IMG/VR virus record: IMGVR_UViG_3300032562_000003
Location: 186,001 to 250,000 of that record
DNA length: 64,000 nt
Strand: one strand, 5' to 3'
Below, one piece after another: positions 13,303 to 24,126 of the stretch. Within the stretch, counting starts at the first letter, position 1; each line of letters opens with the position of its first letter. Both the position numbers and the translations under genes were made by a program. The notes under the pieces are model-generated. The model made no database searches. It saw nothing but the letters and a program-made list of their open reading frames with translations, and had not been told where the DNA came from.

Positions 13303-13370
13303 ATAAATAGATGTGAGTCGCGGGACTGCAATCCCCACTCACTCTAATGCTAGAAGGAGCTATCAGCATG
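13303..13370 (+). promoter_or_regulatory. late promoter + conserved structured leader of HNH gene (copy 1)
   Basis: TAAATA 13304-09; GTGAGT/ACTCAC stem (13313-18/13337-42); AAGGAG SD; blocks shared with 24124..24194(-). Confidence 0.7.
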
Positions 13371-14030
13371 TCTATTTATCGTAAAATTTACGAACAGAAT
13401 TTTGGTCCCATACCCAAAGACGGTGACGGAAGAAGTTGCGATGTTCATCATATAGATGGTAACCGCAATAATAATGTACCGGAAAATTTAATCGCATTGT
13501 CTATACAAGATCATTACGATATTCATTATCAGCAAGGAGATTATGGTGCATGTTGGCTCATTTCAAGAAAGCTACGGTTGACGCCAGAGGAACTATCAGA
13601 CCTCGCCAAATTAACCGGCGCCAACCGCATCGCAAACGGCACACATCACTTTTTAAAAAGGCCAGATGGGTCATCGTTAGGAAAAGACAGTGTACTCAGA
13701 CAAACTGAAAACGGGACGAATGCTTTCTCTGGAGGAGAAGTTCAAAGAAAATCTAACGCTAAGCGAGTGAGGGAAGGAACTCACCATTTTCTTAGTGGTG
13801 ATATACAAAGAAGAACTCAACAAAGGTTGGTGGAGAACGGGACTCATCATTTAATGGGGAACGGAGAATTTCAACGAAATGTTCAGAAAACATTGTTAGA
13901 GAATGGAACTCACCACTTTCTTACGAATCATCCAAATAAAATTCAGGTAACTTGTCCGCATTGCAACAAAACTGGCGGAAAAACTAACATGCATCGATAC
14001 CATTTCGATAAGTGTAGGGTCTTAAAATAA
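13368..14030 (+). CDS. HNH homing endonuclease with GTHHF repeats and C-terminal Zn finger
   Basis: HHIDGNRNNNVPENL...HYDIH; repeats NGTHHFL; CPHC...HFDKC; start at ATG 13368 after SD. Confidence 0.85.
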   Translation: MSIYRKIYEQNFGPIPKDGDGRSCDVHHIDGNRNNNVPENLIALSIQDHYDIHYQQGDYGACWLISRKLRLTPEELSDLAKLTGANRIANGTHHFLKRPDGSSLGKDSVLRQTENGTNAFSGGEVQRKSNAKRVREGTHHFLSGDIQRRTQQRLVENGTHHLMGNGEFQRNVQKTLLENGTHHFLTNHPNKIQVTCPHCNKTGGKTNMHRYHFDKCRVLK

Positions 14031-14062: not shown

Positions 14063-16603
14063 ATGGCAATTAGAGAAGTATTCTACTCCGGTTCCAAACC
14101 CAATGTCCATCCAAGAGAAAAATTTGCTGAATCACTAGAAGATGCTAGGAATCAGTGTACGACTGAGCATTTTTGGATTATCAACGAGTTTTGTGACTAC
14201 CGTAAATTTGATTGGGACTTTGATTTCGAGCTATTACCTGACGAAGATATTTGGGCAGAGGCACACGACAATGTATGGCCTAGCCAACATCAAAAAGATA
14301 GTGGTACATGGCTGTGTCCTAAGGTAGCCGGTGATTATACTATCTATCGAACCGATGTTCCCCCAATTCAACGCAAGAATGAAATCAATGATTTTTGGAT
14401 TATAGATCCGGCCCTGGATAAATCTAGGTTTGACTTTTCTTGGCACCCAGATCCTACGTCTCCTCCATACATATATCAATTCGGTACTCTGCTCGATGAA
14501 AACGACGGACCCAGATACGTCACTCCCTATAATGACGGAACCATAGTACATCTAGAACGCAAGGAGGTCATACTAGAAGACCTAGAGTTTTCGAAGTACT
14601 ACATCACTACTACATTGGAAGATTTAATCAACGACCACACTAATGAAATCTTTTGGGCATTGAATCCTGAAATTGATTATTCTGGGTTTGACTTTAAATG
14701 GGTCCCTGACAGTAAGAACGTATATCACATAAATGCATTTGGTACGAAAGACAATATAAACTCCCAGACTTACTTTGTTAATGGTAAGATGTGGGCACGT
14801 GGTTATCGGGACATTAACTACATTGAGGATAAGGTACTAGATGTACGAACCAAGATCGATATTTTCTTTGTCGATAAAGGAAATCCTCAGGCACAAGAAC
14901 GCTTTCAGCAATTATCTGAGCGTATGGGCAACGTAACTAAAACTAGATATCTGAACAGCTGGGTTGACACGATCAATCGTTGTGTGACTAAATCAACTAC
15001 CAATCTATGTTGGATTCTCAATAGTGAATTAGACTATTCGTCATTTGAGTTTGATTTCTATCCTAGCCCATGGCAGATGAACTTAGTTCATGTGTTTGGA
15101 ACTCAGTGGTCACACTGGGGAACAACCTTTATGGTTAACAAAAATACATTTGCTGATGATACCAAATATATAAAAGTCATTGAGCATTTGCCTAATATAA
15201 ATTTTGTAAAACGATCACCTGCTAAGGCAGTTGATTGTCTTTATGCTATAGTAATCATCGACCATGGTAACGGTGTTGATACAGTAAAAGATGATCTACT
15301 CAGTAAAAATCTGAGCGAAAGAAACATCATTGCTGTGAAATATGATACCAATTATCTAAAAACATTCAAGGAGGTACTCAGTAAATTAGATGTCAATCGT
15401 GAACATTATGTATGGATTTGTAGTAGCGTGTGTGATTATAGCAGATTTGATTTTAGCTATATCTGCGATCCGTACACCAAAGAACAACTCCACGTCTTCC
15501 CGAGCGGTAATCAAAAATTAGGAGACACGTTTCTAGTAAACGTCAACAAGCTGCGCAAATTGATAGCAGATATGCATCGTCTAGAAGACTATGAAAAGAT
15601 TAATTATAATCAACATCAAGTTGTCTCAAGATTGATGACACCCACAACTATCGAAGGTGCATATTTTCCAAATGAAACACATATGGATTATGCTAGAAAT
15701 TATGAATGGGATTTTCCTTATGTAACTCTAGTAACTGAAGAAAACTGGGATATGGATCCTGAAATTGATCCCGAACCTATGTGTCTTTGGTCACCCGAAC
15801 AGAAAGCAATCATTATTTCTAGTACAGGTGCAACTAGAGTTACGATTCCTCGCGAGGCTAAAAACTATGTCAAAAGTGAACTGTATGATTACCCGTATAT
15901 AAAGCGAGCAAAAAAACTAACCAAATCTAAACCGATGGACATAGTGTATCTCAGTAACGGTGAAGCCGGGGCCGAAAAAAACTGGGAGCATCTACTTCAA
16001 ATTACTAAAAACATACCAAATAGGGTAGTCAGAGTGGATGGAGTTAATGGTCGAGTTGCTGCATATCATGCTGCTGCCGAAGCCAGCGAGACACCATGGT
16101 TATTTACGGTATTCGCTAAGTTACACATCAATTCTAATTTTGATTGGTCATGGCAACCAGATCGAATGCAAGCACCTAAGCATTATATCTTTCATGCGAA
16201 GAATCCGGTCAATGGATTGATCTACGGTCACCAAGCGATGATCGCGTATAATAAGCAATTAGTGCTAGAGAATGACGGTTATGGACTAGACTTTACGTTG
16301 GATGACCTGCACGAAGTTGTTCCACTCATGTCCGGTACTGCAAACTATAACACTGATCCGTTCTCTACTTGGCGTACCGCATTCCGTGAAGTGGTCAAAT
16401 TGAAGGCCGAAGATACCGACATTGCCCGAGAGCGATTAGAAGCTTGGCTTACTAAAGCTGAAGGTGATTTTGCAGAATATAGCATCAAGGGTGCAAAAGA
16501 CGCAGAAGCCTATTACGATGAAGTTGATGGCGATTTTGATGCACTGCGATTGAGCTACGAGTGGGAATGGTTAAAATCACGCTTCGTGCAAAAATACGGT
16601 TGA
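14063..16603 (+). CDS. large multi-module glycosyltransferase-like protein
   Basis: about five repeated W..(D)Y..FDF.W.P modules; last module resembles 209..1150. Confidence 0.55.
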   Translation: MAIREVFYSGSKPNVHPREKFAESLEDARNQCTTEHFWIINEFCDYRKFDWDFDFELLPDEDIWAEAHDNVWPSQHQKDSGTWLCPKVAGDYTIYRTDVPPIQRKNEINDFWIIDPALDKSRFDFSWHPDPTSPPYIYQFGTLLDENDGPRYVTPYNDGTIVHLERKEVILEDLEFSKYYITTTLEDLINDHTNEIFWALNPEIDYSGFDFKWVPDSKNVYHINAFGTKDNINSQTYFVNGKMWARGYRDINYIEDKVLDVRTKIDIFFVDKGNPQAQERFQQLSERMGNVTKTRYLNSWVDTINRCVTKSTTNLCWILNSELDYSSFEFDFYPSPWQMNLVHVFGTQWSHWGTTFMVNKNTFADDTKYIKVIEHLPNINFVKRSPAKAVDCLYAIVIIDHGNGVDTVKDDLLSKNLSERNIIAVKYDTNYLKTFKEVLSKLDVNREHYVWICSSVCDYSRFDFSYICDPYTKEQLHVFPSGNQKLGDTFLVNVNKLRKLIADMHRLEDYEKINYNQHQVVSRLMTPTTIEGAYFPNETHMDYARNYEWDFPYVTLVTEENWDMDPEIDPEPMCLWSPEQKAIIISSTGATRVTIPREAKNYVKSELYDYPYIKRAKKLTKSKPMDIVYLSNGEAGAEKNWEHLLQITKNIPNRVVRVDGVNGRVAAYHAAAEASETPWLFTVFAKLHINSNFDWSWQPDRMQAPKHYIFHAKNPVNGLIYGHQAMIAYNKQLVLENDGYGLDFTLDDLHEVVPLMSGTANYNTDPFSTWRTAFREVVKLKAEDTDIARERLEAWLTKAEGDFAEYSIKGAKDAEAYYDEVDGDFDALRLSYEWEWLKSRFVQKYG

Positions 16604-16629
16604 CATGCAATGTCATATATGATTAAATA
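16600..16629 (+). promoter_or_regulatory. sigma70-type promoter overlapped by TAAATA late motif, driving tmRNA
   Basis: TTGACA(16600)-17 nt-TTAAAT(16623); TAAATA 16624-29. Confidence 0.6.
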
Positions 16630-16635
16630 GTATTT

Positions 16636-16965
16636 GTTCGTTGATACGGACTTAAAACCGGGGAAGACAGGGGTGCGATTCCCCTCGCCTCCACCAGTAA
16701 ACACACGATAACAGGACGCTGGCTCTGTGAAGCGGGATATCGGGGTAGCTGCCGAGAAGACGGGGAGAGCATCGTGTGTTTTCTTATGGGGGCGTATAGT
16801 ATCGATTCACGGCTAGTAGGAAAGTGGAGAACACGGTAAGAAACGACCGTCAATCAGTTCAAATTACTAAATGCAAACGAAAATGATGCATATGAAGGCC
16901 TTGCGTTAGCCGCATAAGTCTTTTGGGCTTTGCTAGTTGAGCCTCGAAACAGAATCAACTAGCAC
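16636..16965 (+). ncRNA. ssrA: circularly permuted (two-piece) tmRNA
   Basis: T-arm AGGGG-TGCGATT-CCCCT + CGCCTCC-ACCA (ends 16696) precedes GGGGGCG (16788), giving acceptor stem with G3.U70; tag ORF 16873-16917 ANENDAYEGLALAA*; terminal hairpin 16931-16964; outer ends approximate. Confidence 0.92.
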
Positions 16966-17037
16966 CTATAAAACCTTTAAATATGATATATCGTCCTATA
17001 GGTCATAAATAATTTTGACATGTTAGGAGAACAAATC

Positions 17038-17409
17038 ATGAAAAACAAGTCAATTATTGCAATCGCTGCATTGGTAGCACTAAGTTTGGCTGCACCTGCA
17101 TCCGCACACCACTCGTTCGCAATGTTCGACAACCAAAAGTCGGTGACATTGGAAGGAACAGTAAAAGAATTTCAATGGACTAATCCGCATTCTTGGATTC
17201 AACTAATTGTGACTGATTCCTCTGGTAAGCCAGTTGAATGGTCAATCGAAGGCGGTAGCCCAAATGGTCTATCACGTTCCGGTTGGAAGCGCACTTCATT
17301 GAAGTCCGGCGATAAGGCTGTCGTAGTTGTACATCCTCTTAAGGATGGCACGAACGGTGGCTCGCTCGTATCTGTTGCGGTTAATGGACAACCAATCGGC
17401 AGTCGTTAA
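17038..17409 (+). CDS. secreted DUF6152-like protein
   Basis: signal peptide then AHHSFAMFD...GTVKEFQWTNPHSWI; family name recalled, not searched; TAAATA upstream (~17006). Confidence 0.7.
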   Translation: MKNKSIIAIAALVALSLAAPASAHHSFAMFDNQKSVTLEGTVKEFQWTNPHSWIQLIVTDSSGKPVEWSIEGGSPNGLSRSGWKRTSLKSGDKAVVVVHPLKDGTNGGSLVSVAVNGQPIGSR

Positions 17410-17455
17410 TTCTTTATATAAGTGAAGTTAGTTGATGTTCATTACTAAATACAGT

Positions 17456-19465
17456 ATGGACATCAACGAACTTCATTCTTTTAAATTATCAGATGCGGTC
17501 AAATTCCACACCAAACTAAACCCAAAGCTTTGGAAGAATGACCAGCTTGATCCATTGGTCAGAGACCAATTATTAGTCATAGCAAAAGATTTTGTGAGCC
17601 AATTGGGCGTAGGTGATCTTGATGTGGTTGACGTAACTATATCTGGATCTAACGCAGCTTTCTCATATACTCCTCATTCTGACTTAGACCTTCACGTTGT
17701 TGTGAATATGAGCAAGCTACACGACGATGAAGTCTATCAGGAATTGTTCAGAGCAAAGAAAACTCTATATAACGATTCGCACGATATCACAGTGCATGGC
17801 ATTCCAGTCGAACTATATGCGCAGAATGCCGCAGAGCCGGTCGTATCATTAGGTGAATACAGCCTGCTTCATGACAAGTGGATCAAGATTCCTAAAAGAA
17901 AAACAGCCAATCTAGATCAAAATGCTACCAAAGCAAAGTACGATCAATTAACCGACCTAATCAGTCTAGCAGTAAAGACTAAAGATGAAGATCGTGTCAA
18001 CAAAGCTATTAAGCTAATTAAGAGATATCGCCAGGCAGGTCTTGACACAGGTGGCGAATTTAGTCCAGAAAATCTTGCATATAAAGCAATTCGTGCGCAA
18101 GGCGGAATCGATGACCTATATGCAGTGCGTGATTCTCTACACAGTAAAAAGCTAAGCATCGAAGAAGATGACCAGCTACTAGATAAACCAACCCTCACCG
18201 TAGATGAACTGGCTAGAAAACACGGTGTAGACCGAATGTCCATAGCAAAGCAACTGGACAAAGGTATAAAGGTCGAACTAGAACATACTAGTCATAAAGA
18301 CATTGCGCGAGAGATTGCATTGGATCATATCAGCGAGGATCCGAAGTATTATGACAAGTTAGCTAAGGCTTCTTTGGAGGAACAGACTTTAACTGAACTA
18401 GCAGATGCTCCTTATCCGTATACTCTAACTTCTAGCGGACCTCACATGCTAGAGTACCAATTTACAGCAGCAAATAATATAAAATATATAGTTGAACTTA
18501 AAGTTATGTACGGTGGAGTTAGTTTGCGATTTCATGCTGCGGGACAGTCTAGCAATGATGATAGATTTCGCATCACTAAAACCGGCGACTCTATTAAGGT
18601 AATGTCTACTATCGCTACAATTCTTCGTTCATACATAAAAGAAAATTCACCGTCTTCAATCTCATTTGGATGTTATGCAGACGAACCCACAAAGGTTAAG
18701 CTGTACACTAGTATGGCAAAACGTCTGTCAAAAGAGTTTCCATATGAAGTTGGTGGACCATATTCGTATAGAGATCCTACATACGGTAATTCTGTGGGAT
18801 TCAGATTGACCAAAAAAAAACAACAATCAGGTAACGTAAACAAAGACTCAGGATACATTCCAAACAGTGCCCAAAAGAATGATCCTGTATTATCTCTTGT
18901 CGATAAAGCAAGAGAAAGAATGGGCGAAGATGCATTATACGGTGGAAACTGTGGAATGTTCTCGTTGGCTTTAGCAAAAAAATTGAAAGAGGATGGAATC
19001 CCGGTCACGCTGGGTTTGCTGTTTAATGATGCTAATAATTTAGGAACCCCTTCTGATATTGTAGCCAACGAAGCTGACTTGTATCATGTTGTAGTTGAAT
19101 ATAACGGCAAATATTATGATGGCACAGGGGTCGTGACACCTAACACGCTGTTAGATATCGCCAAAGACCAGTACGGTGATGACAACCCGGGATGGTTTAC
19201 TGATGCTGATCCGTTTGATCCGAGCGTACAGCGAGTAATTCGTAGTGAAACAAACTGGAACAAGCCTGCGTCTACTTTCTATCAAGCGCTAACCGAAGCC
19301 TCAGGGTACATTCCAAGCAATTCCCAAAAGAACGATCCTCGTTTTAAAACCGCGCTTACGGTAGACGTGAAACCGAACGCAATAAAGAAAAATGCTAAGG
19401 CATTCGGATGGCTAACATCACGGGCAGGTATACCTCCACAAGCCAATCCTAACGGAAAGATTTAA
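17456..19465 (+). CDS. multi-domain head-type protein: Pol-beta nucleotidyltransferase + DUF5661-like + unknown + Cys-His-Asp hydrolase-like
   Basis: GSNAAFSYTPHSDLDLH; GIKVELEH...ALDHISEDPKYY; GGNCGMF...YHVVV...YYDG; TAAATA 17446-51. Confidence 0.6.
   Translation: MDINELHSFKLSDAVKFHTKLNPKLWKNDQLDPLVRDQLLVIAKDFVSQLGVGDLDVVDVTISGSNAAFSYTPHSDLDLHVVVNMSKLHDDEVYQELFRAKKTLYNDSHDITVHGIPVELYAQNAAEPVVSLGEYSLLHDKWIKIPKRKTANLDQNATKAKYDQLTDLISLAVKTKDEDRVNKAIKLIKRYRQAGLDTGGEFSPENLAYKAIRAQGGIDDLYAVRDSLHSKKLSIEEDDQLLDKPTLTVDELARKHGVDRMSIAKQLDKGIKVELEHTSHKDIAREIALDHISEDPKYYDKLAKASLEEQTLTELADAPYPYTLTSSGPHMLEYQFTAANNIKYIVELKVMYGGVSLRFHAAGQSSNDDRFRITKTGDSIKVMSTIATILRSYIKENSPSSISFGCYADEPTKVKLYTSMAKRLSKEFPYEVGGPYSYRDPTYGNSVGFRLTKKKQQSGNVNKDSGYIPNSAQKNDPVLSLVDKARERMGEDALYGGNCGMFSLALAKKLKEDGIPVTLGLLFNDANNLGTPSDIVANEADLYHVVVEYNGKYYDGTGVVTPNTLLDIAKDQYGDDNPGWFTDADPFDPSVQRVIRSETNWNKPASTFYQALTEASGYIPSNSQKNDPRFKTALTVDVKPNAIKKNAKAFGWLTSRAGIPPQANPNGKI
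18848..19339 (+). repeat. 39-nt direct repeat pair (18848-18886, 19301-19339) encoding SGYIP.(N/S).QKNDP
   Basis: 34/39 identical by manual alignment; brackets the Cys-His-Asp domain. Confidence 0.85.
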
Positions 19466-19466
19466 C

Positions 19467-20045
19467 ATGAAAATCAAAGATGTACTGAACGAAGGAATGA
19501 CGTTTAATCCTGTAGTAGAAAAATCTTTTACTAAAGGGGAACATGCCGGCGAAACGTATTGGACTGGTTCTGATTGGGAACGCAAAGAGAAACACGAATG
19601 TCCTGACTGCAAAGGTACAGGCAAGGGAACATATTCAAACGGCGAATTTCCTTGCGTATTCTGCGGCGGCAAAGGGTACGAAGAGGAAACTTTTTCAGAT
19701 GCGCCGGAGCTTTCGGTCAGTAACGCCAATGGTAAAATTATTCAAGAAATGTTAGGTTTGGATCCGGATTATTCAGGTGTCATTCATAATAAAGACTTAT
19801 CTAACATAATGCGTCGATTGATACTGCTTAAAAACAAAGGTGCTCAGCAGTACACCAGAGAGCCTAAACAAGAACGTGGCCCGACACATCAATGGACAGA
19901 TGACCATGGAATCACACATATAGGTCGCGGCCCAACGATGCACGACTATGGCCTCAGTCAAGATCAGATTAATAAGTACGTGGACAGACTCATTCAGATT
20001 ATTCAATTCGCACAAAAAAACAATGCGAGTTTGGGCTGGGGTTGA
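19467..20045 (+). CDS. protein with DnaJ-type zinc finger
   Basis: CPDCKGTG and CVFCGGKG. Confidence 0.65.
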   Translation: MKIKDVLNEGMTFNPVVEKSFTKGEHAGETYWTGSDWERKEKHECPDCKGTGKGTYSNGEFPCVFCGGKGYEEETFSDAPELSVSNANGKIIQEMLGLDPDYSGVIHNKDLSNIMRRLILLKNKGAQQYTREPKQERGPTHQWTDDHGITHIGRGPTMHDYGLSQDQINKYVDRLIQIIQFAQKNNASLGWG

Positions 20046-20469: not shown

Positions 20470-21570
20470 ATGTCTCGTGATATTGACACTCACACGATTA
20501 CTTCTACTCAGGCCCGAAAGGCCATCCTCACTGCTTTCAAGGCAAAGCGTCCTGTCTTCCTCTGGGGTCCTCCGGGCATCGGCAAGTCGGAAGTCGTTCA
20601 GGAAATCACTGACGAACTCGGTGGTATCATGTTTGATCTGCGTATGGCGCAGATGGAACCTACTGACATTCGCGGTATTCCCTTCTACAATAAGTACATC
20701 GGCAAGATGGATTGGGCTGAGCCCGTCGATCTGCCCAGTCAAGAAGTCGCCGATCAATATCCGATCGTCGTTCTGTTCCTCGATGAAATGAACTCTGCTC
20801 CCCCTTCGGTGCAAGCTGCTGGCTATCAGCTGGTTCTGAACCGTCGAGTCGGTAAGTACGTCCTCCCCGATAACGTCGTCATCGTTGCTGCTGGCAACCG
20901 TGACAGTGACAAGGGTGTCACGTATCGTATGCCCATGCCCCTTGCTAATCGCTTCGTTCACCTCGAAATGAAGTATGATTTCGCTTCTTGGCAGATTTGG
21001 GCGGTCAACAAGAACATTCACAAGGACGTTGTCGGCTATCTGTCTTTCTCTAAGCAAGACGGTTATGACTTCGACGCTAAGAGCTCCAGTCGAGCCTTCG
21101 CTACTCCTCGTTCTTGGACTTTCGTGAGCGATCTGCTCGTTGACGAACAAAACGTGGATAACGATACTCTGTTCAATCTCGTTGCCGGCGCGATCGGTGA
21201 TGGTCTCGCAACGAAGTTCATGGCTCACCGTCGAGTTGCTGGTCAGATGCCTGACCCGGCTGACATTCTTGAAGGTAGGGTCAAGGATCTTAAGGTCAAG
21301 GAAATCTCGGCTATGTACTCGTTGACGATCTCCATGTGCTATGAACTGAAGGACGCTCTCGAAAACAAGCGTGTGGACAACAAGAAGTTCCATGAAATGG
21401 GCAGCAACTTCATCGAATACATCATGAATAATTTCGAGACGGAACTGGTGGTCATGGGCGCTAAGATCGCCCTCAAGACTTACAAGCTGCCGCTTGAGCC
21501 CTCGCAACTGCGTAACTTTGATGAATTCTACAAGAAGTACGGCAAGTACATTGTAGAAGCTGGCAACTAA
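20470..21570 (+). CDS. MoxR-like AAA+ ATPase
   Basis: GPPGIGKS, LFLDEMNSA, AAGN, LANRFVHL; AAGGAG SD. Confidence 0.9.
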   Translation: MSRDIDTHTITSTQARKAILTAFKAKRPVFLWGPPGIGKSEVVQEITDELGGIMFDLRMAQMEPTDIRGIPFYNKYIGKMDWAEPVDLPSQEVADQYPIVVLFLDEMNSAPPSVQAAGYQLVLNRRVGKYVLPDNVVIVAAGNRDSDKGVTYRMPMPLANRFVHLEMKYDFASWQIWAVNKNIHKDVVGYLSFSKQDGYDFDAKSSSRAFATPRSWTFVSDLLVDEQNVDNDTLFNLVAGAIGDGLATKFMAHRRVAGQMPDPADILEGRVKDLKVKEISAMYSLTISMCYELKDALENKRVDNKKFHEMGSNFIEYIMNNFETELVVMGAKIALKTYKLPLEPSQLRNFDEFYKKYGKYIVEAGN

Positions 21571-21583
21571 GTCAGCGGCTCCT

Positions 21584-21617
21584 GGGGAGGGATTAGAGAC
21601 AGTCCCTCCCCTTTTTT
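21584..21617 (+). terminator. intrinsic terminator
   Basis: GGGGAGGGA/TCCCTCCCC stem followed by T6. Confidence 0.85.
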
Positions 21618-21627
21618 CTATTATCTA

Positions 21628-21656
21628 TTGCATATCATGCCGCATTCTGTTATATT
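21628..21656 (+). promoter_or_regulatory. sigma70-type early promoter
   Basis: TTGCAT-17 nt-TATATT. Confidence 0.55.
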
Positions 21657-21685
21657 GTCTTATAACTTAATCAAAGGACACATTC

Positions 21686-22975
21686 ATGAGCGCCGTAATT
21701 ACCCCTACTAAAAAGAGCAAGCGTACTCGCAGCAAGAAGTACGAAAATCTTATCGGTCCTATGGATCCTAAGATTGATGCTCAAGCCCGCGAACGTCTTG
21801 TTACGGCACGCATCGGTCTCCTTCTGCGTCATGCGTTTTTCGGCAACCTTGCTACTCGTCTTGCTCTTACTAATGCGGACGAATGGTGTCCGACTGCTGC
21901 GACCGACGGTCTGAGATTTTACTATAACTCTCGCTTCATCATGATGCTCAAGACGAAGGAAGTTGAATTCCTCGTTGGTCACGAAGTTCTGCACGTGGTC
22001 TACGATCACATGGGTCGTCGTGACAATCGTGATCCGGAAATCTGGAACATCGCTGATGACTATGCAGTCAACGCAGACTTGAAGCGTCACCGCGTGGGCG
22101 AATTTATTACTACTGTGCCTTGCTTGTATGAGTCTAAGTACGAAAACTGGGCCGCAGAAGCCATCTACGATGACCTCATGAAGAATGTCAAGTACATCAA
22201 TATTGAGGATCTCCTCGACAAGATGTTGGACGATCACGTTGACGGTGACGACGACGGCGACGGCCGCGCAGGCGGCGACAAACCTGGCAAGGGCCGCCCC
22301 AAGCTTTCTCAGGAAGAAAAGGACCGCATTCGTCAAGAGGTCCGTCAAGCGGTAATCAACGCTGCTTCTACGGCTGAGGCTGGCACTGTTCCGAAGGGCG
22401 TTGAACGCATGATCAAGCAACTGACTAGCCCGATCATGCCCTGGCGCGAATTGATCCAAACTAATCTGACCTCTGCTATCAAGTCTGATTATACTTGGAT
22501 GCGTCCTTCTCGTCGCAGCTGGCACATGGACGCTGTCATGCCCGGCATGAATCCTGGCGAAGAAATTGACGTTGACATTTATATCGACATGTCAGGTTCT
22601 ATCTCGCAGAAGCAAGGTATGCAGTTTCTTTCGGAAGTTGCCGGCATGATGGATGCGTTCGATGGCTACAGCCTTCGGGTCTCGACATTCGACACTAAGG
22701 TCTATAACACTCAAGAATTTTCTTCTGAAAACATGGAAAACATTGAGGAGTATCAACTGTTCGGTGGCGGTGGCACTGACTTTGACTGCGTATTCGATGA
22801 CCTTAAGGAAGCAGGACGAGTTCCGGCTCGTCTGATCGTCTTCACGGACGGGTATCCTTGCGGCAGCTGGGGCGATCAAAATTACTGTGATACGACTTGG
22901 ATCATTCACGGTGACCCCGATCCTCACCCGCCCTTCGGTCAATGGGCCATTTATGATGACCATCGCAAGTCCTAA
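21686..22975 (+). CDS. metallopeptidase-like (HExxH) + VWA domain protein (DUF2201-like), MoxR partner
   Basis: TAATDG, HEVLH, MIDAS-like DMSGS, GGGGTDF, VFTDG. Confidence 0.85.
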   Translation: MSAVITPTKKSKRTRSKKYENLIGPMDPKIDAQARERLVTARIGLLLRHAFFGNLATRLALTNADEWCPTAATDGLRFYYNSRFIMMLKTKEVEFLVGHEVLHVVYDHMGRRDNRDPEIWNIADDYAVNADLKRHRVGEFITTVPCLYESKYENWAAEAIYDDLMKNVKYINIEDLLDKMLDDHVDGDDDGDGRAGGDKPGKGRPKLSQEEKDRIRQEVRQAVINAASTAEAGTVPKGVERMIKQLTSPIMPWRELIQTNLTSAIKSDYTWMRPSRRSWHMDAVMPGMNPGEEIDVDIYIDMSGSISQKQGMQFLSEVAGMMDAFDGYSLRVSTFDTKVYNTQEFSSENMENIEEYQLFGGGGTDFDCVFDDLKEAGRVPARLIVFTDGYPCGSWGDQNYCDTTWIIHGDPDPHPPFGQWAIYDDHRKS

Positions 22976-23257: not shown

Positions 23258-23495
23258 CGACATTAACATAAATCAGTGGTTCATGGACCGAGAATTAAGT
23301 CATACCCCTGAACATTTTATAAGATCAAGCACTCCTTTTACTATCGAGTCGCGCATGTGGATTTTGGAAAGCCTTCAAGGCAGATTTTCTACACATTACC
23401 CCAACACATCGACCTATATTATGAATAGAATAGCACTTTGTCCATCGTTTGAAGATCCACAAGAAGCAGTGTTTTACGAACTCAAGTGGGGCTAG
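23244..23495 (+). CDS. small protein with C-terminal F.L.W-type motif
   Basis: likely GTG start 23244; ends SFEDPQEAVFYELKWG. Confidence 0.6.
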   Translation: MKTIDDININQWFMDRELSHTPEHFIRSSTPFTIESRMWILESLQGRFSTHYPNTSTYIMNRIALCPSFEDPQEAVFYELKWG

Positions 23496-24126
23496 GTCTT
23501 ACTAGTTCCCACCCTCCAGTAGCGTTAAGTCCTTTGTTATTTACAATACGACTAATTGCACCGGACTTGAGATTATAACATGTCCTTAATTGATAATTCG
23601 TCATTGATACTACCTCCCCGGTCATACGATTTTTCCAAGTTCTAACAGTATGGTCATACTGCGGATGTTTTTCTTTTTTCTTGGGGTCATTAACAAAATG
23701 ATGAGTCCCGGCAGCAAGTCTGTTTAATTGTCGTTTACTGGCAGCTTCCCTGTCCAACCAATTATGTGTTCCATTAAGAATGCGGTCTCTGTTTAGTTGC
23801 GCTTGGTGCTTGTTGGGCCCAACCCAAGGATGCTTGCCCGTTTTAACTAGCTTGTTAGCATTTTTTGTTGCGAGGGCTACTAGCTCATCGGGAAGTAAGT
23901 TGATCCTACTTGACATTTTTACACAAGCTGCCCAATCACCCTGTGAATAATGAATGTTGTAATGTTCTTGTATAGATACACATTTCAAGTTAGCAGGATT
24001 ATTATTGGAATGATTTCCGTCTATATGATGTATTTCATATGACCGACCCGACTCTTCCTTAGGAATTGGACCGTAGTGATGTTCATAGATATTACGGTAC
24101 TTGTTTGTACCACAATAAATACACAT
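23482..24126 (-). CDS. HNH homing endonuclease (paralogue of 13368..14030)
   Basis: YGPIPK...GRSYEIHHIDGNHSNNNPANL...HYNIHYSQGD; inverted relative to neighbours. Confidence 0.85.
   Translation of the reverse strand: MCIYCGTNKYRNIYEHHYGPIPKEESGRSYEIHHIDGNHSNNNPANLKCVSIQEHYNIHYSQGDWAACVKMSSRINLLPDELVALATKNANKLVKTGKHPWVGPNKHQAQLNRDRILNGTHNWLDREAASKRQLNRLAAGTHHFVNDPKKKEKHPQYDHTVRTWKNRMTGEVVSMTNYQLRTCYNLKSGAISRIVNNKGLNATGGWELVRPSPT

Follow-up and report, generated by a model that had tools for sequence, protein, structure and literature searches.

The locus described here raises the question of whether a phage gene that strings several unrelated, enzyme-like modules into a single polypeptide encodes cargo for the phage head and, if so, which parts of the protein stay constant while the others change. 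The gene occupies positions 17456..19465 (+ strand, stop codon included) of a 64,000-nucleotide (nt) stretch of DNA, here called the window, that represents positions 186,001 to 250,000 of the IMG/VR virus record IMGVR_UViG_3300032562_000003, and its product, a 669-amino acid (aa) modular ("polyvalent") protein, is designated P0001. An earlier, sequence-only reading had described this product as a cassette-like head polyprotein with swappable enzymatic cargo, and had not picked up the two features by which the family can be defined, namely a universal N-terminal nucleotidyltransferase and an ultra-conserved C-terminal tail of 55 aa. Our analysis points to a large family of "polyvalent" effector polyproteins carried by T4-like phages, most of them jumbo, from lakes and other waters, and we lean towards the view that the S77 prohead protease cuts the precursor once it has been packed into the prohead, and that the products are ejected.

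The record that contains the window is 258,859 base pairs (bp) long with an estimated completeness of 73%, and the genome is at least 259 kb in size. It encodes a major capsid protein of the gp23 type (PF07068, 327 bits) and a gene for an S77 prohead protease of the gp21 type (C1:129736-130398; PF03420 match of 89 bits at C1:129871-130317), and its large terminase is ~50% identical to those of the jumbo phages Phosso, PA5oct and Atu_ph07. Judged by its gene content, this is the genome of a large (jumbo-size) T4-like phage from lake and freshwater metagenomes.

The gene family and its bookend plan

A word-based search returned more than 1,565 relatives of P0001. Local alignments of relatives reveal a fixed frame, and so does a scan of IMG/VR with the tail alone, which yielded a tail-bearing set of 47 distinct complete open reading frames (ORFs) of 302-1,385 aa, and all 47 begin with the nucleotidyltransferase. 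The minimal members measure 302-370 aa, and 368-aa relatives consist of the nucleotidyltransferase, a DUF5661 domain and the tail. Cargo is placed between these two bookends or is appended behind the tail, and the types encountered are DUF6934, ART-PolyVal, GNAT, cytidine deaminase, ParB_N, M48, GIY-YIG and GGCT; among 44 relatives, ART-PolyVal and GNAT were each found in 7, ParB_N in 2 and M48 in 1, and none of these four is present in P0001 itself. DUF5661, which P0001 does carry, is itself to be regarded as cargo, since only 7 of the 44 tail-selected members have it. The swapping of cargo is most directly seen at 27 syntenic loci, at which orf89, CobS-like AAA (76-87% identity, mostly 84-87%), and DUF2201 (67-80% identity) lie downstream, and an 846-aa ORF lies upstream at the 11 loci where the fetched flank reached that far. 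The complete ORFs at these 27 loci come in 13 different lengths, from 555 to 1,162 aa. The family is modular, exchanges its cargo rapidly and keeps its bookends, and the exchangeable cargo that had been proposed from the one sequence is borne out by this comparison of architectures, which are anything but invariant among relatives.

Two further observations concern the composition of the family. Inspection by eye revealed an HExxH zincin-like segment between DUF5661 and the tail in two relatives (HEMQH at aa 640-650 of P0002 and HELQH at aa 612-622 of P0014), and zincin peptidases are a hallmark of the polyvalent proteins. The IMG/VR contig 3300027749_002876 (524,565 bp) carries two different tail-bearing genes (L130 and L136, of 806 and 680 aa), so that some phages may carry two such polyproteins, unless this contig is chimeric.

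The C-terminal tail and the direct repeat

The basic tail of P0001 comprises aa 615-669 (ASGYIPSNSQKNDPRFKTALTVDVKPNAIKKNAKAFGWLTSRAGIPPQANPNGKI; 19298..19462, + strand); it is preceded by L612-T613-E614 and starts with A615. The consensus tail peptide is ASGYIPSEKEKNDPRFKTALTVDVKPDSIKKNAKAFGWKTSRAGIPPTAKPSGKI, and the stretch that begins with the Ser of SGYIP makes up the final 54-55 residues of 87 of 119 proteins. Orthologous tails are 76-87% identical in amino-acid sequence at the same time as their third-codon positions are near saturation. A tail of this kind is kept by selection on the peptide, as the near-saturated third positions indicate, and the same positions rule out recent DNA exchange as the cause of its conservation. 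By this codon-level measure the tail is under very strong purifying selection.

The start of the tail is present twice in the gene, on either side of module 4, a Cys-His-Asp domain at aa 478-614 (18887..19297, + strand). A repeat search located copy 1 at 18837..18886 (+), which partially duplicates tail codons 1-13 and encodes SGYIPNSAQKNDP, and copy 2 at 19290..19339 (+), which spans the junction ALTE-A together with the true start of the tail and encodes SGYIPSNSQKNDP. The bracketing repeat noticed earlier, in which 34 of 39 nt are identical (18848-18886 versus 19301-19339), can be extended to 42 of 50 nt (18837-18886 versus 19290-19339). Two diverged genes, P0002 and P0122, also have the full bracket around module 4; in P0121 and P0123, which lack part of the N-terminus through truncation, only the downstream copy is seen, and the duplicated tail start precedes module 4 in every carrier gene that reaches that point. 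The two copies in the window gene agree at 11 of 13 third-codon positions (85%), as compared to 18-45% between orthologous tails, and both copies read QKNDP in the window gene where both read EKNDP in P0002. The high third-position identity and the shared QKNDP are suggestive of a DNA-level duplication of the gene's own tail when the module was inserted, or of later conversion between the copies, in either case involving 13 codons only; the insertion by duplication or recombination suspected at the outset thereby gains ground. In such a scenario the Cys-His-Asp cassette would have been inserted after tail codon 13, duplicating those codons. What was captured as module 4 is a complete gene, since the fused module spans the full length of its free-standing relatives.

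Junction motifs and the prohead protease

The four Glu-ending linkers singled out in the sequence-only reading (LSIEE, ASLEE, TLTE and ALTE) are all present, and it is their conservation across the family that gives them weight. Junction 1, LSIEE (aa 233-237; 18152..18166, + strand), retains L233 in 118, I235 in 112, E236 in 113 and E237 in 97 of 120 relatives, and lies in a linker modelled with low confidence (a predicted local distance difference test score, pLDDT, below 50 for aa 234-241). Junction 2, ASLEEQTLTE (aa 305-314; 18368..18397, +), contains two (L)xE sites, ASLEE at 305-309 and TLTE at 311-314; its LEE is kept at the end of DUF5661, and aa 308-312 again have a pLDDT below 50, these two junctions being the sole internal segments of the model to fall so low. 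The third, ALTE, occupies aa 611-614, directly before the tail, and in minimal relatives such as P0103 the LEE abuts the tail directly. In the residues that precede SGYIP in 125 sequences, P3 is Val, Ile or Leu in 115, P1 is Glu in 115 and P1' is Ala in 114, and P2 and P4-P8 are free to vary. Similar sites mark other boundaries: 11 of 13 full DUF6934-module starts are preceded by [ILVM]xE[ASG], as compared to 5.9% of random windows, and the other two by a hydrophobic residue-x-Glu (hxE) followed by Leu; extensions beyond the tail are joined to it through GK(I/L)xE in 20 of 22 distinct cases. When distant multidomain proteins are included, hxE follows members of the module 4 family in 16 of 30 embedded copies versus 18 of 103 free-standing ones (Fisher p = 2e-4), and being commoner behind embedded copies it appears to belong to the linker and not to the fold. 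A related pattern is found at the very start of the protein, where MDINE (17456..17470, +) represents the family pattern M-D-(L/I)-x-E followed by L; M1, E5 and L6 do not vary, 114 of 120 relatives have Leu or Ile at position 3, and MDINE is possibly a short propeptide that ends in a gp21-type site.

Phage T4 gp21 cuts after L/I-x-E, and gp22 is cut at a Glu-Ala bond (PMC9026906). T4 Alt loses an N-terminal propeptide of 7 residues, is also trimmed at its C-terminus and is ejected (PMC9026906). The linkers of the P0001 family, which end in (I/L/V)-x-Glu and mostly continue with Ala or Ser, match the gp21 motif, and cleavage at these sites can be predicted on that ground. The likely specificity of the phage's own S77 protease is suggested by its gp23 homologue, in which LLAE is followed by SSAG where the propeptide would be expected to end; the scaffold protein of the phage, too, contains many such sites. 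An S77 protease was also found in three of five other records that carry relatives; the two that lack it are only 29-33% complete.

Start codon and late-type promoter

The reading frame of P0001 is open from a TTG at 17432 to the stop codon at 19463-19465. The true start is the ATG at 17456, as in the sequence-only reading: the equivalent Met opens the protein in 109 of 120 relatives, and a promoter-like motif falls within the alternative upstream codons. This motif, ACTAAATAC (17444..17452, + strand; core TAAATA at 17446-17451), has its core 4 nt 5' of the ATG and is separated from the ATG by AGT, and the corresponding sequences in orthologues are GATAAATACAGTATG and GCTAAATACTACATG. A TAAATA that precedes the ATG by 4-7 nt is shared by 42 of the 47 distinct complete IMG/VR relatives, the distance being exactly 4 nt in 35. 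The motif is strongly enriched in the genome at large, with 66 copies of TAAATA observed in the 60 nt upstream of ORFs versus 8.5 expected, and 43 copies of ATAAATA versus 3.0. Its members fall into two placements, one 14-32 nt 5' of the start codon and followed by a Shine-Dalgarno sequence, the other 3-6 nt before the ATG and lacking one, and TAAATA-N3-6-ATG begins an ORF of at least 50 aa in 22 of 47 cases, compared to 18% for random ATGs (p = 8e-6). Genes preceded by TAAATA include those for the portal, a baseplate wedge subunit, a tail-fibre-like protein, several virion proteins and the large terminase (TerL), and the motif therefore behaves like the late promoter of T4, TATAAATA. As an exact 8-mer TATAAATA is scarce in this genome (13 copies), and the working motif here is nTAAATA(C). 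An alternative promoter candidate, TATATAAG around 17415, does not match the motif of this genome and was set aside, and a scan for sigma-70 promoters and terminators gave results at the level of chance.

The late promoter that had been noticed upstream of the gene accordingly has its distance from the ATG, a genome-wide enrichment and its conservation in relatives to recommend it. Its position implies that the mRNA of the gene is late and leaderless or nearly so, and, as the arrangement is kept in 42 of 47 relatives, late and probably leaderless transcription looks, at the level of the promoter, like a conserved trait of the family. In about 20 genes of the genome just 3-6 nt, most often 5, separate TAAATA from the ATG and a Shine-Dalgarno sequence is lacking, with examples in the window at 14063, 33151 (TerL), 34717, 46704 and 62169, and this placement suggests some 20 leaderless late mRNAs in this T4-like phage. 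The literature that was searched contained no relevant report of leaderless late promoters of the T4-like kind.

The four modules of P0001

P0001 consists of four modules (nucleotidyltransferase, DUF5661, DUF6934-like and Cys-His-Asp), the number that had been distinguished from the sequence alone, and free-standing viral relatives are known for each of them. Module 1 (aa 1-237; 17456..18166, + strand) comprises a nucleotidyltransferase of the Pol-beta superfamily and a helical C-terminal subdomain. Residues 15-234 match PHROG 36119 at 8e-44, and the motif G64-S65...D76-x-D78 is invariant in relatives. With the AlphaFold2 model of this module (pLDDT 75), the Foldseek matches are solely Pol-beta nucleotidyltransferases with a helical second domain, led by AAD(9) (E 1e-3) and followed by AadA, CdnE/CdnD, TENT5 and ANT(4'); VIA-align of the module against TENT5, AadA and CdnD gave Z values of 5.1-5.5, and a wide VIA-align search with the N-terminal model was swamped by helical bundles. 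The Pfam model NTP_transf_2 scores only E 0.06 on module 1, and the nearest Atlas clusters carry NTP_transf_2. In the model the module thus combines the signature of the Pol-beta nucleotidyltransferases with their alpha/beta core fold, and its activity is predicted.

Module 2 (aa 238-309; 18167..18382, +) is a helical DUF5661 domain that passes the Pfam threshold (PF18905 on aa 250-304, 3.3e-13, 50.2 bits versus a cut-off of 27) and that also stands alone in many viral contigs. The literature searched held nothing relevant on DUF5661 or ART-PolyVal, and no mention of DUF5661 was found in it. Module 3 (aa 315-460; 18398..18835, +) is DUF6934-like, with a match to PF22028 on aa 322-428 that fails the threshold (2.4e-4, 21.6 bits versus a cut-off of 27); its nearest Atlas clusters are DUF6934, and from its sequence it would at best be a distant member of that family. 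DUF6934-type modules are present in 43 of 123 relatives, in up to 4 tandem copies.

Module 4 is the most distinctive piece of cargo. A word-based search restricted to it gave just four relatives, and an exhaustive representative search was run for this reason, which uncovered 184 representative clusters of homologues, mainly free-standing proteins of 140-170 aa. The candidate catalytic residues (C499, codon 18950-18952; H544, codon 19085-19087; D555, codon 19118-19120; all + strand) are near-invariant, being retained in 130, 134 and 133 of 134 homologues, respectively, and in the AlphaFold2 model (pLDDT 94) a helix begins at the Cys, with the His and the Asp located on two strands that are adjacent to each other. 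VIA-align matched the model to protein-glutaminase (Z 6.8), the deamidase SseI (5.3), vasohibin (5.1), arylamine N-acetyltransferase (5.1) and PMT-C3 (4.9), with further matches to NlpC/P60, transglutaminases, OspI and TecA, and the Atlas search led to Transglut_core families and YunG-like proteins; the fold class also includes CPR-C4 and LapG. The Z values are middling and sequence identity is ~10%, but the list is coherent. It was by VIA-align and the Atlas search alone that the fold was recognised, Foldseek against the PDB having returned nothing below E 0.5, and PDB sequence and profile searches, whether with the whole protein or with either of the two module alignments, having given chance-level matches only (cutinase, an SH2 domain, and DrrA at E 0.96). 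No Pfam model reaches its cut-off on module 4, the closest being Phage_YunG-like (PF24591) with 17.7 bits versus 27 over aa 494-560, and among 100 relatives there were 15 weak YunG-like matches and 1 to Transglut_core (PF01841). The label of Cys-His-Asp hydrolase was a fair one in light of the triad and the fold matches, and the modelled structure indicates that module 4 is papain/transglutaminase-like and could be a deamidase, a peptidase or an acyl-transferase.

A free-standing homologue of module 4, P0127 (L098, 2067-2795), adjoins a 242-aa gene with a faint ART-PolyVal match, and neighbouring separate genes with such modules are a possible source of cassettes.

What the protein may do, and alternatives

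In the reading that we favour by a modest balance of probability, P0001 would be made together with the parts of the virion, because a T4-type late promoter abuts its start codon, and the precursor would enter the prohead core, as do T4 Alt and the internal proteins. The gp21-type S77 protease would then cut the junctions and free the modules, possibly along with the tail peptide and the 5-residue N-terminal piece, and the pieces would be ejected alongside the DNA and find their targets in host defence or takeover before any phage gene is expressed. The cargo has been acquired by the in-frame capture of whole free-standing phage genes between, and sometimes after, the bookends, and its turnover would involve recombination within the sequences that are conserved at junctions or in the tail. 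A more general form of this reading, which we put forward tentatively, is that any gene that is flanked by the nucleotidyltransferase head and the 55-aa tail and follows an (I/L/V)-x-Glu linker would be packaged, excised by the prohead protease and delivered to the next host, with the tail, perhaps in combination with the head, serving as a capsid-targeting device. If it holds, the enzymes encoded at this hypervariable locus would be an injected arsenal, and packaged effectors could be read directly from metagenomes by means of the junction rule.

Several observations weigh against packaging. In the main rival reading the protein acts late in the cytoplasm of the infected cell as a multi-enzyme and is never packaged, contributing, for example, to countering abortive infection, to superinfection exclusion, or to nucleotide or protein modification. 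The neighbours of the gene are metabolic or accessory (tmRNA, CobS-like, ThyA) and the head genes are ~70 kb away, so that the term "head polyprotein" used at first has no backing from gene context. The nucleotidyltransferase need not be a virion protein, given that its free-standing homologues in S-CRM01 and Cr30 sit in replication-type regions, and the constant pairing of tail and nucleotidyltransferase in the tail-bearing set could equally reflect that they are functionally coupled. Pfam and PHROG searches gave no match that links P0001 to Alt, to the internal proteins or to the T4 capsid-targeting sequence, and known head-internal proteins are without similarity to it. In P0001 taken alone, [IL]xE occurs 10 times in 669 aa, which is about the number expected by chance, and five of these lie inside domains; the signal must for this reason be sought in the conservation of junctions across the family and not in this one protein. 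The site between modules 3 and 4 lacks the Glu in this phage, reading V-N-K followed by D (Lys-Asp in place of Glu-Ala), and with the Glu of the cutting motif replaced these two modules may stay joined even if cleavage occurs elsewhere. Finally, hxE is a short motif whose conservation could be partly structural, as in a helix cap at the edge of a module. For a cytoplasmic protein the hxE sites would be just such linker or helix-cap features, and the tail a docking or regulatory peptide, or a substrate or regulator of the nucleotidyltransferase. We nevertheless regard a purely cytoplasmic role as less likely: ADP-ribosyltransferases, acetyltransferases and deaminases that are made only late make little sense unless they are carried to the next cell, for which T4 Alt is the precedent, and hxE is enriched where modules are embedded, flanks module types that are unrelated to each other, and shows the constrained P3 and P1 and free P2 of a protease site.

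The cutting, if it occurs, might also be ascribed to the protein itself, with the Cys-His-Asp module acting as a protease on the linkers in the manner of viral polyproteins. Its fold class does include cysteine peptidases (vasohibin, CPR-C4, LapG, NlpC/P60), and autoproteolysis by peptidase domains has been proposed for polyvalent proteins (PMC5512222). Such self-processing is nonetheless very improbable, because module 4 is rare in the family, occurring in only four other members, whereas the junction motif and the tail are universal; most of its relatives are moreover free-standing proteins of ~150 aa with nothing to process, and its best structural matches are protein deamidases and glutaminases. 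Least credible of all is that the fused ORF and its repeat are an artefact of assembly, a chimeric join of separate genes at the repeat. Unitigs from lake metagenomes do break at window positions 19414-19455, inside the tail-coding part, with alternative continuations in the assembly graphs of two runs, a pattern from which co-occurring phages appear to share stretches of tail-coding sequence. The identical gene is nonetheless present in 5 IMG/VR contigs and the identical region in 20 lake or freshwater runs from 19 studies (all runs found being DNA), single contigs from separate studies and years cover the whole gene with zero differences, and the bracketed arrangement recurs, as noted above, in two diverged genes.

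Surroundings of the gene, occurrence and host

Megablast of the region against GenBank phages gave no match, contigs of four lake metagenomes showed no variants in which a cassette was present or absent, and tblastn of each module and of the tail against the phage's own 259 kb revealed no paralogues. Directly 5' of the gene region is a permuted (two-piece) transfer-messenger RNA (tmRNA) of the alphaproteobacterial type (window 16596-17008, +), which scores 113.8 bits with the Rfam model tmRNA_permuted and 78 bits with alpha_tmRNA and for which ARAGORN predicts the tag ANENDAYEGLALAA. Together with terminase relatives in Sinorhizobium and Agrobacterium phages, the alpha-type tmRNA gives a hint that the host is an alphaproteobacterium. 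The tmRNA is separated from the P0001 gene by a gene for a DUF6152 protein of 129 aa (4e-39; window 17020-17409, +) with a signal-peptide-like N-terminus and a late-type motif of its own, ATAAATA, 8 nt before the ATG.

Downstream, a 192-aa ORF (window 19467-20045, +) has two DnaJ-type CxxCxGxG zinc-finger motifs and no Pfam match, and is found at 4 of the 27 syntenic loci; it is probably co-transcribed with the P0001 gene, as it starts 1 nt past the stop codon. It is followed by a CobS/MoxR-like AAA ATPase and a DUF2201 metallopeptidase-VWA gene (window 20470-22975, +), a pair that is highly conserved (mostly 84-87% and 70-80% identity, respectively) beside the hypervariable gene. Two HNH_3 homing-endonuclease-like genes flank the locus (13347-14030, +, and 23482-24126, -), and a similar HNH gene is located upstream in the syntenic locus L014; these genes may promote local recombination. 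In the portal gene of the phage (G000:C1:133415-136474, -, locus L013), which is unusually long at 1,019 aa, an HNH-endonuclease-like segment (aa 468-555) stands behind the portal match (aa 46-340) and may represent an inserted endonuclease or an intein.

Comparison with known systems

The polyvalent proteins, T4 Alt and the internal proteins, and processing by gp21 are all known concepts; in the literature that was searched we found no description of the bookend family, of prohead-protease-type junctions between cargo modules, or of a late promoter that abuts the start codon. Among the closest known systems are the polyvalent proteins of phages and conjugative elements, for which packaging and delivery with the DNA were predicted by Iyer, Burroughs, Anand, de Souza and Aravind in 2017 (PMC5512222). 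Autoproteolysis in these proteins was ascribed to a metallopeptidase domain, and Pol-beta nucleotidyltransferase domains were placed only in the polyvalent proteins of conjugative elements (PMC5512222). The P0001 family resembles them in bearing several unrelated, conflict-type enzymatic domains on one polypeptide, in its occurrence in a portal-terminase phage, and in its combinatorial and rapidly changing architecture; their hallmark domains ART-PolyVal, GNAT, ParB-like and a zincin peptidase are found in relatives of P0001, though not in P0001 itself. It differs from them in its fixed nucleotidyltransferase and 55-aa tail, in junctions that match the trans-acting prohead protease and in belonging to T4-like phages.

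Conserved carriers joined to exchangeable enzymatic cargo, with recombination at the conserved junctions, are also known from MuF-fused effectors and polymorphic toxins (PMC9503650). The P0001 family likewise joins a conserved carrier to exchangeable cargo; its carrier, however, is an enzyme plus a tail peptide instead of a structural head protein, and its cargo is internal and multiple instead of forming a single C-terminal tip. The large phages phiKZ, 201phi2-1 and SPN3US have gp21-like proteases that cleave numerous proteins of the head interior behind the Glu of S/A-x-E or A-x-E (PMC9026906, PMC10052503). Large phages and a three-residue motif that ends in Glu are common to these systems and to the P0001 family, in which cutting is predicted; P3 is Ala or Ser in the ejection and inner-body proteins of the former and Ile, Leu or Val here, and those proteins are neither cassette polyproteins nor homologous to P0001. 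At the level of the cargo, module 4 shares with protein-glutaminase, SseI, PMT-C3, vasohibin and arylamine N-acetyltransferase a Cys that stands at a helix N-terminus and a His and an Asp located on neighbouring strands, and departs from them in that the Z values are only 4.9-6.8, identity is ~10% and no Pfam model reaches its cut-off.

The 55-aa tail is among the most constrained peptides in these genomes and is, on its own, a defined target for experiment. Were the favoured reading correct, there would be a rule, applicable to sequence by itself, for recognising the proteins that uncultured T4-like phages pack and inject, in a very common family of more than 1,500 relatives from many lake metagenomes. 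There would also be a catalogue of first-strike enzymes, among them ADP-ribosyltransferases, acetyltransferases, deaminases and the new Cys-His-Asp family of 184 representative clusters, and the capture of genes at protease-site junctions would have a clear example.

Like Alt and the internal proteins IPI-III of T4, P0001 belongs to a T4-like phage with an S77 protease, is preceded by a late-type promoter and has terminal segments that end in (L/I)-x-Glu. In the T4-like phages, the cargo behind a conserved targeting peptide is also variable. The P0001 family is unlike Alt and IPI-III in having no sequence similarity to them and in chaining several enzymes with internal sites. T4 uses one protein per gene, each with an N-terminal signal of 10 residues (7 in Alt), whereas the conserved peptide of the P0001 family is C-terminal and 55 residues long, and this family would, if the favoured reading holds, be a natural counterpart of the engineered delivery of proteins by means of T4 targeting sequences.

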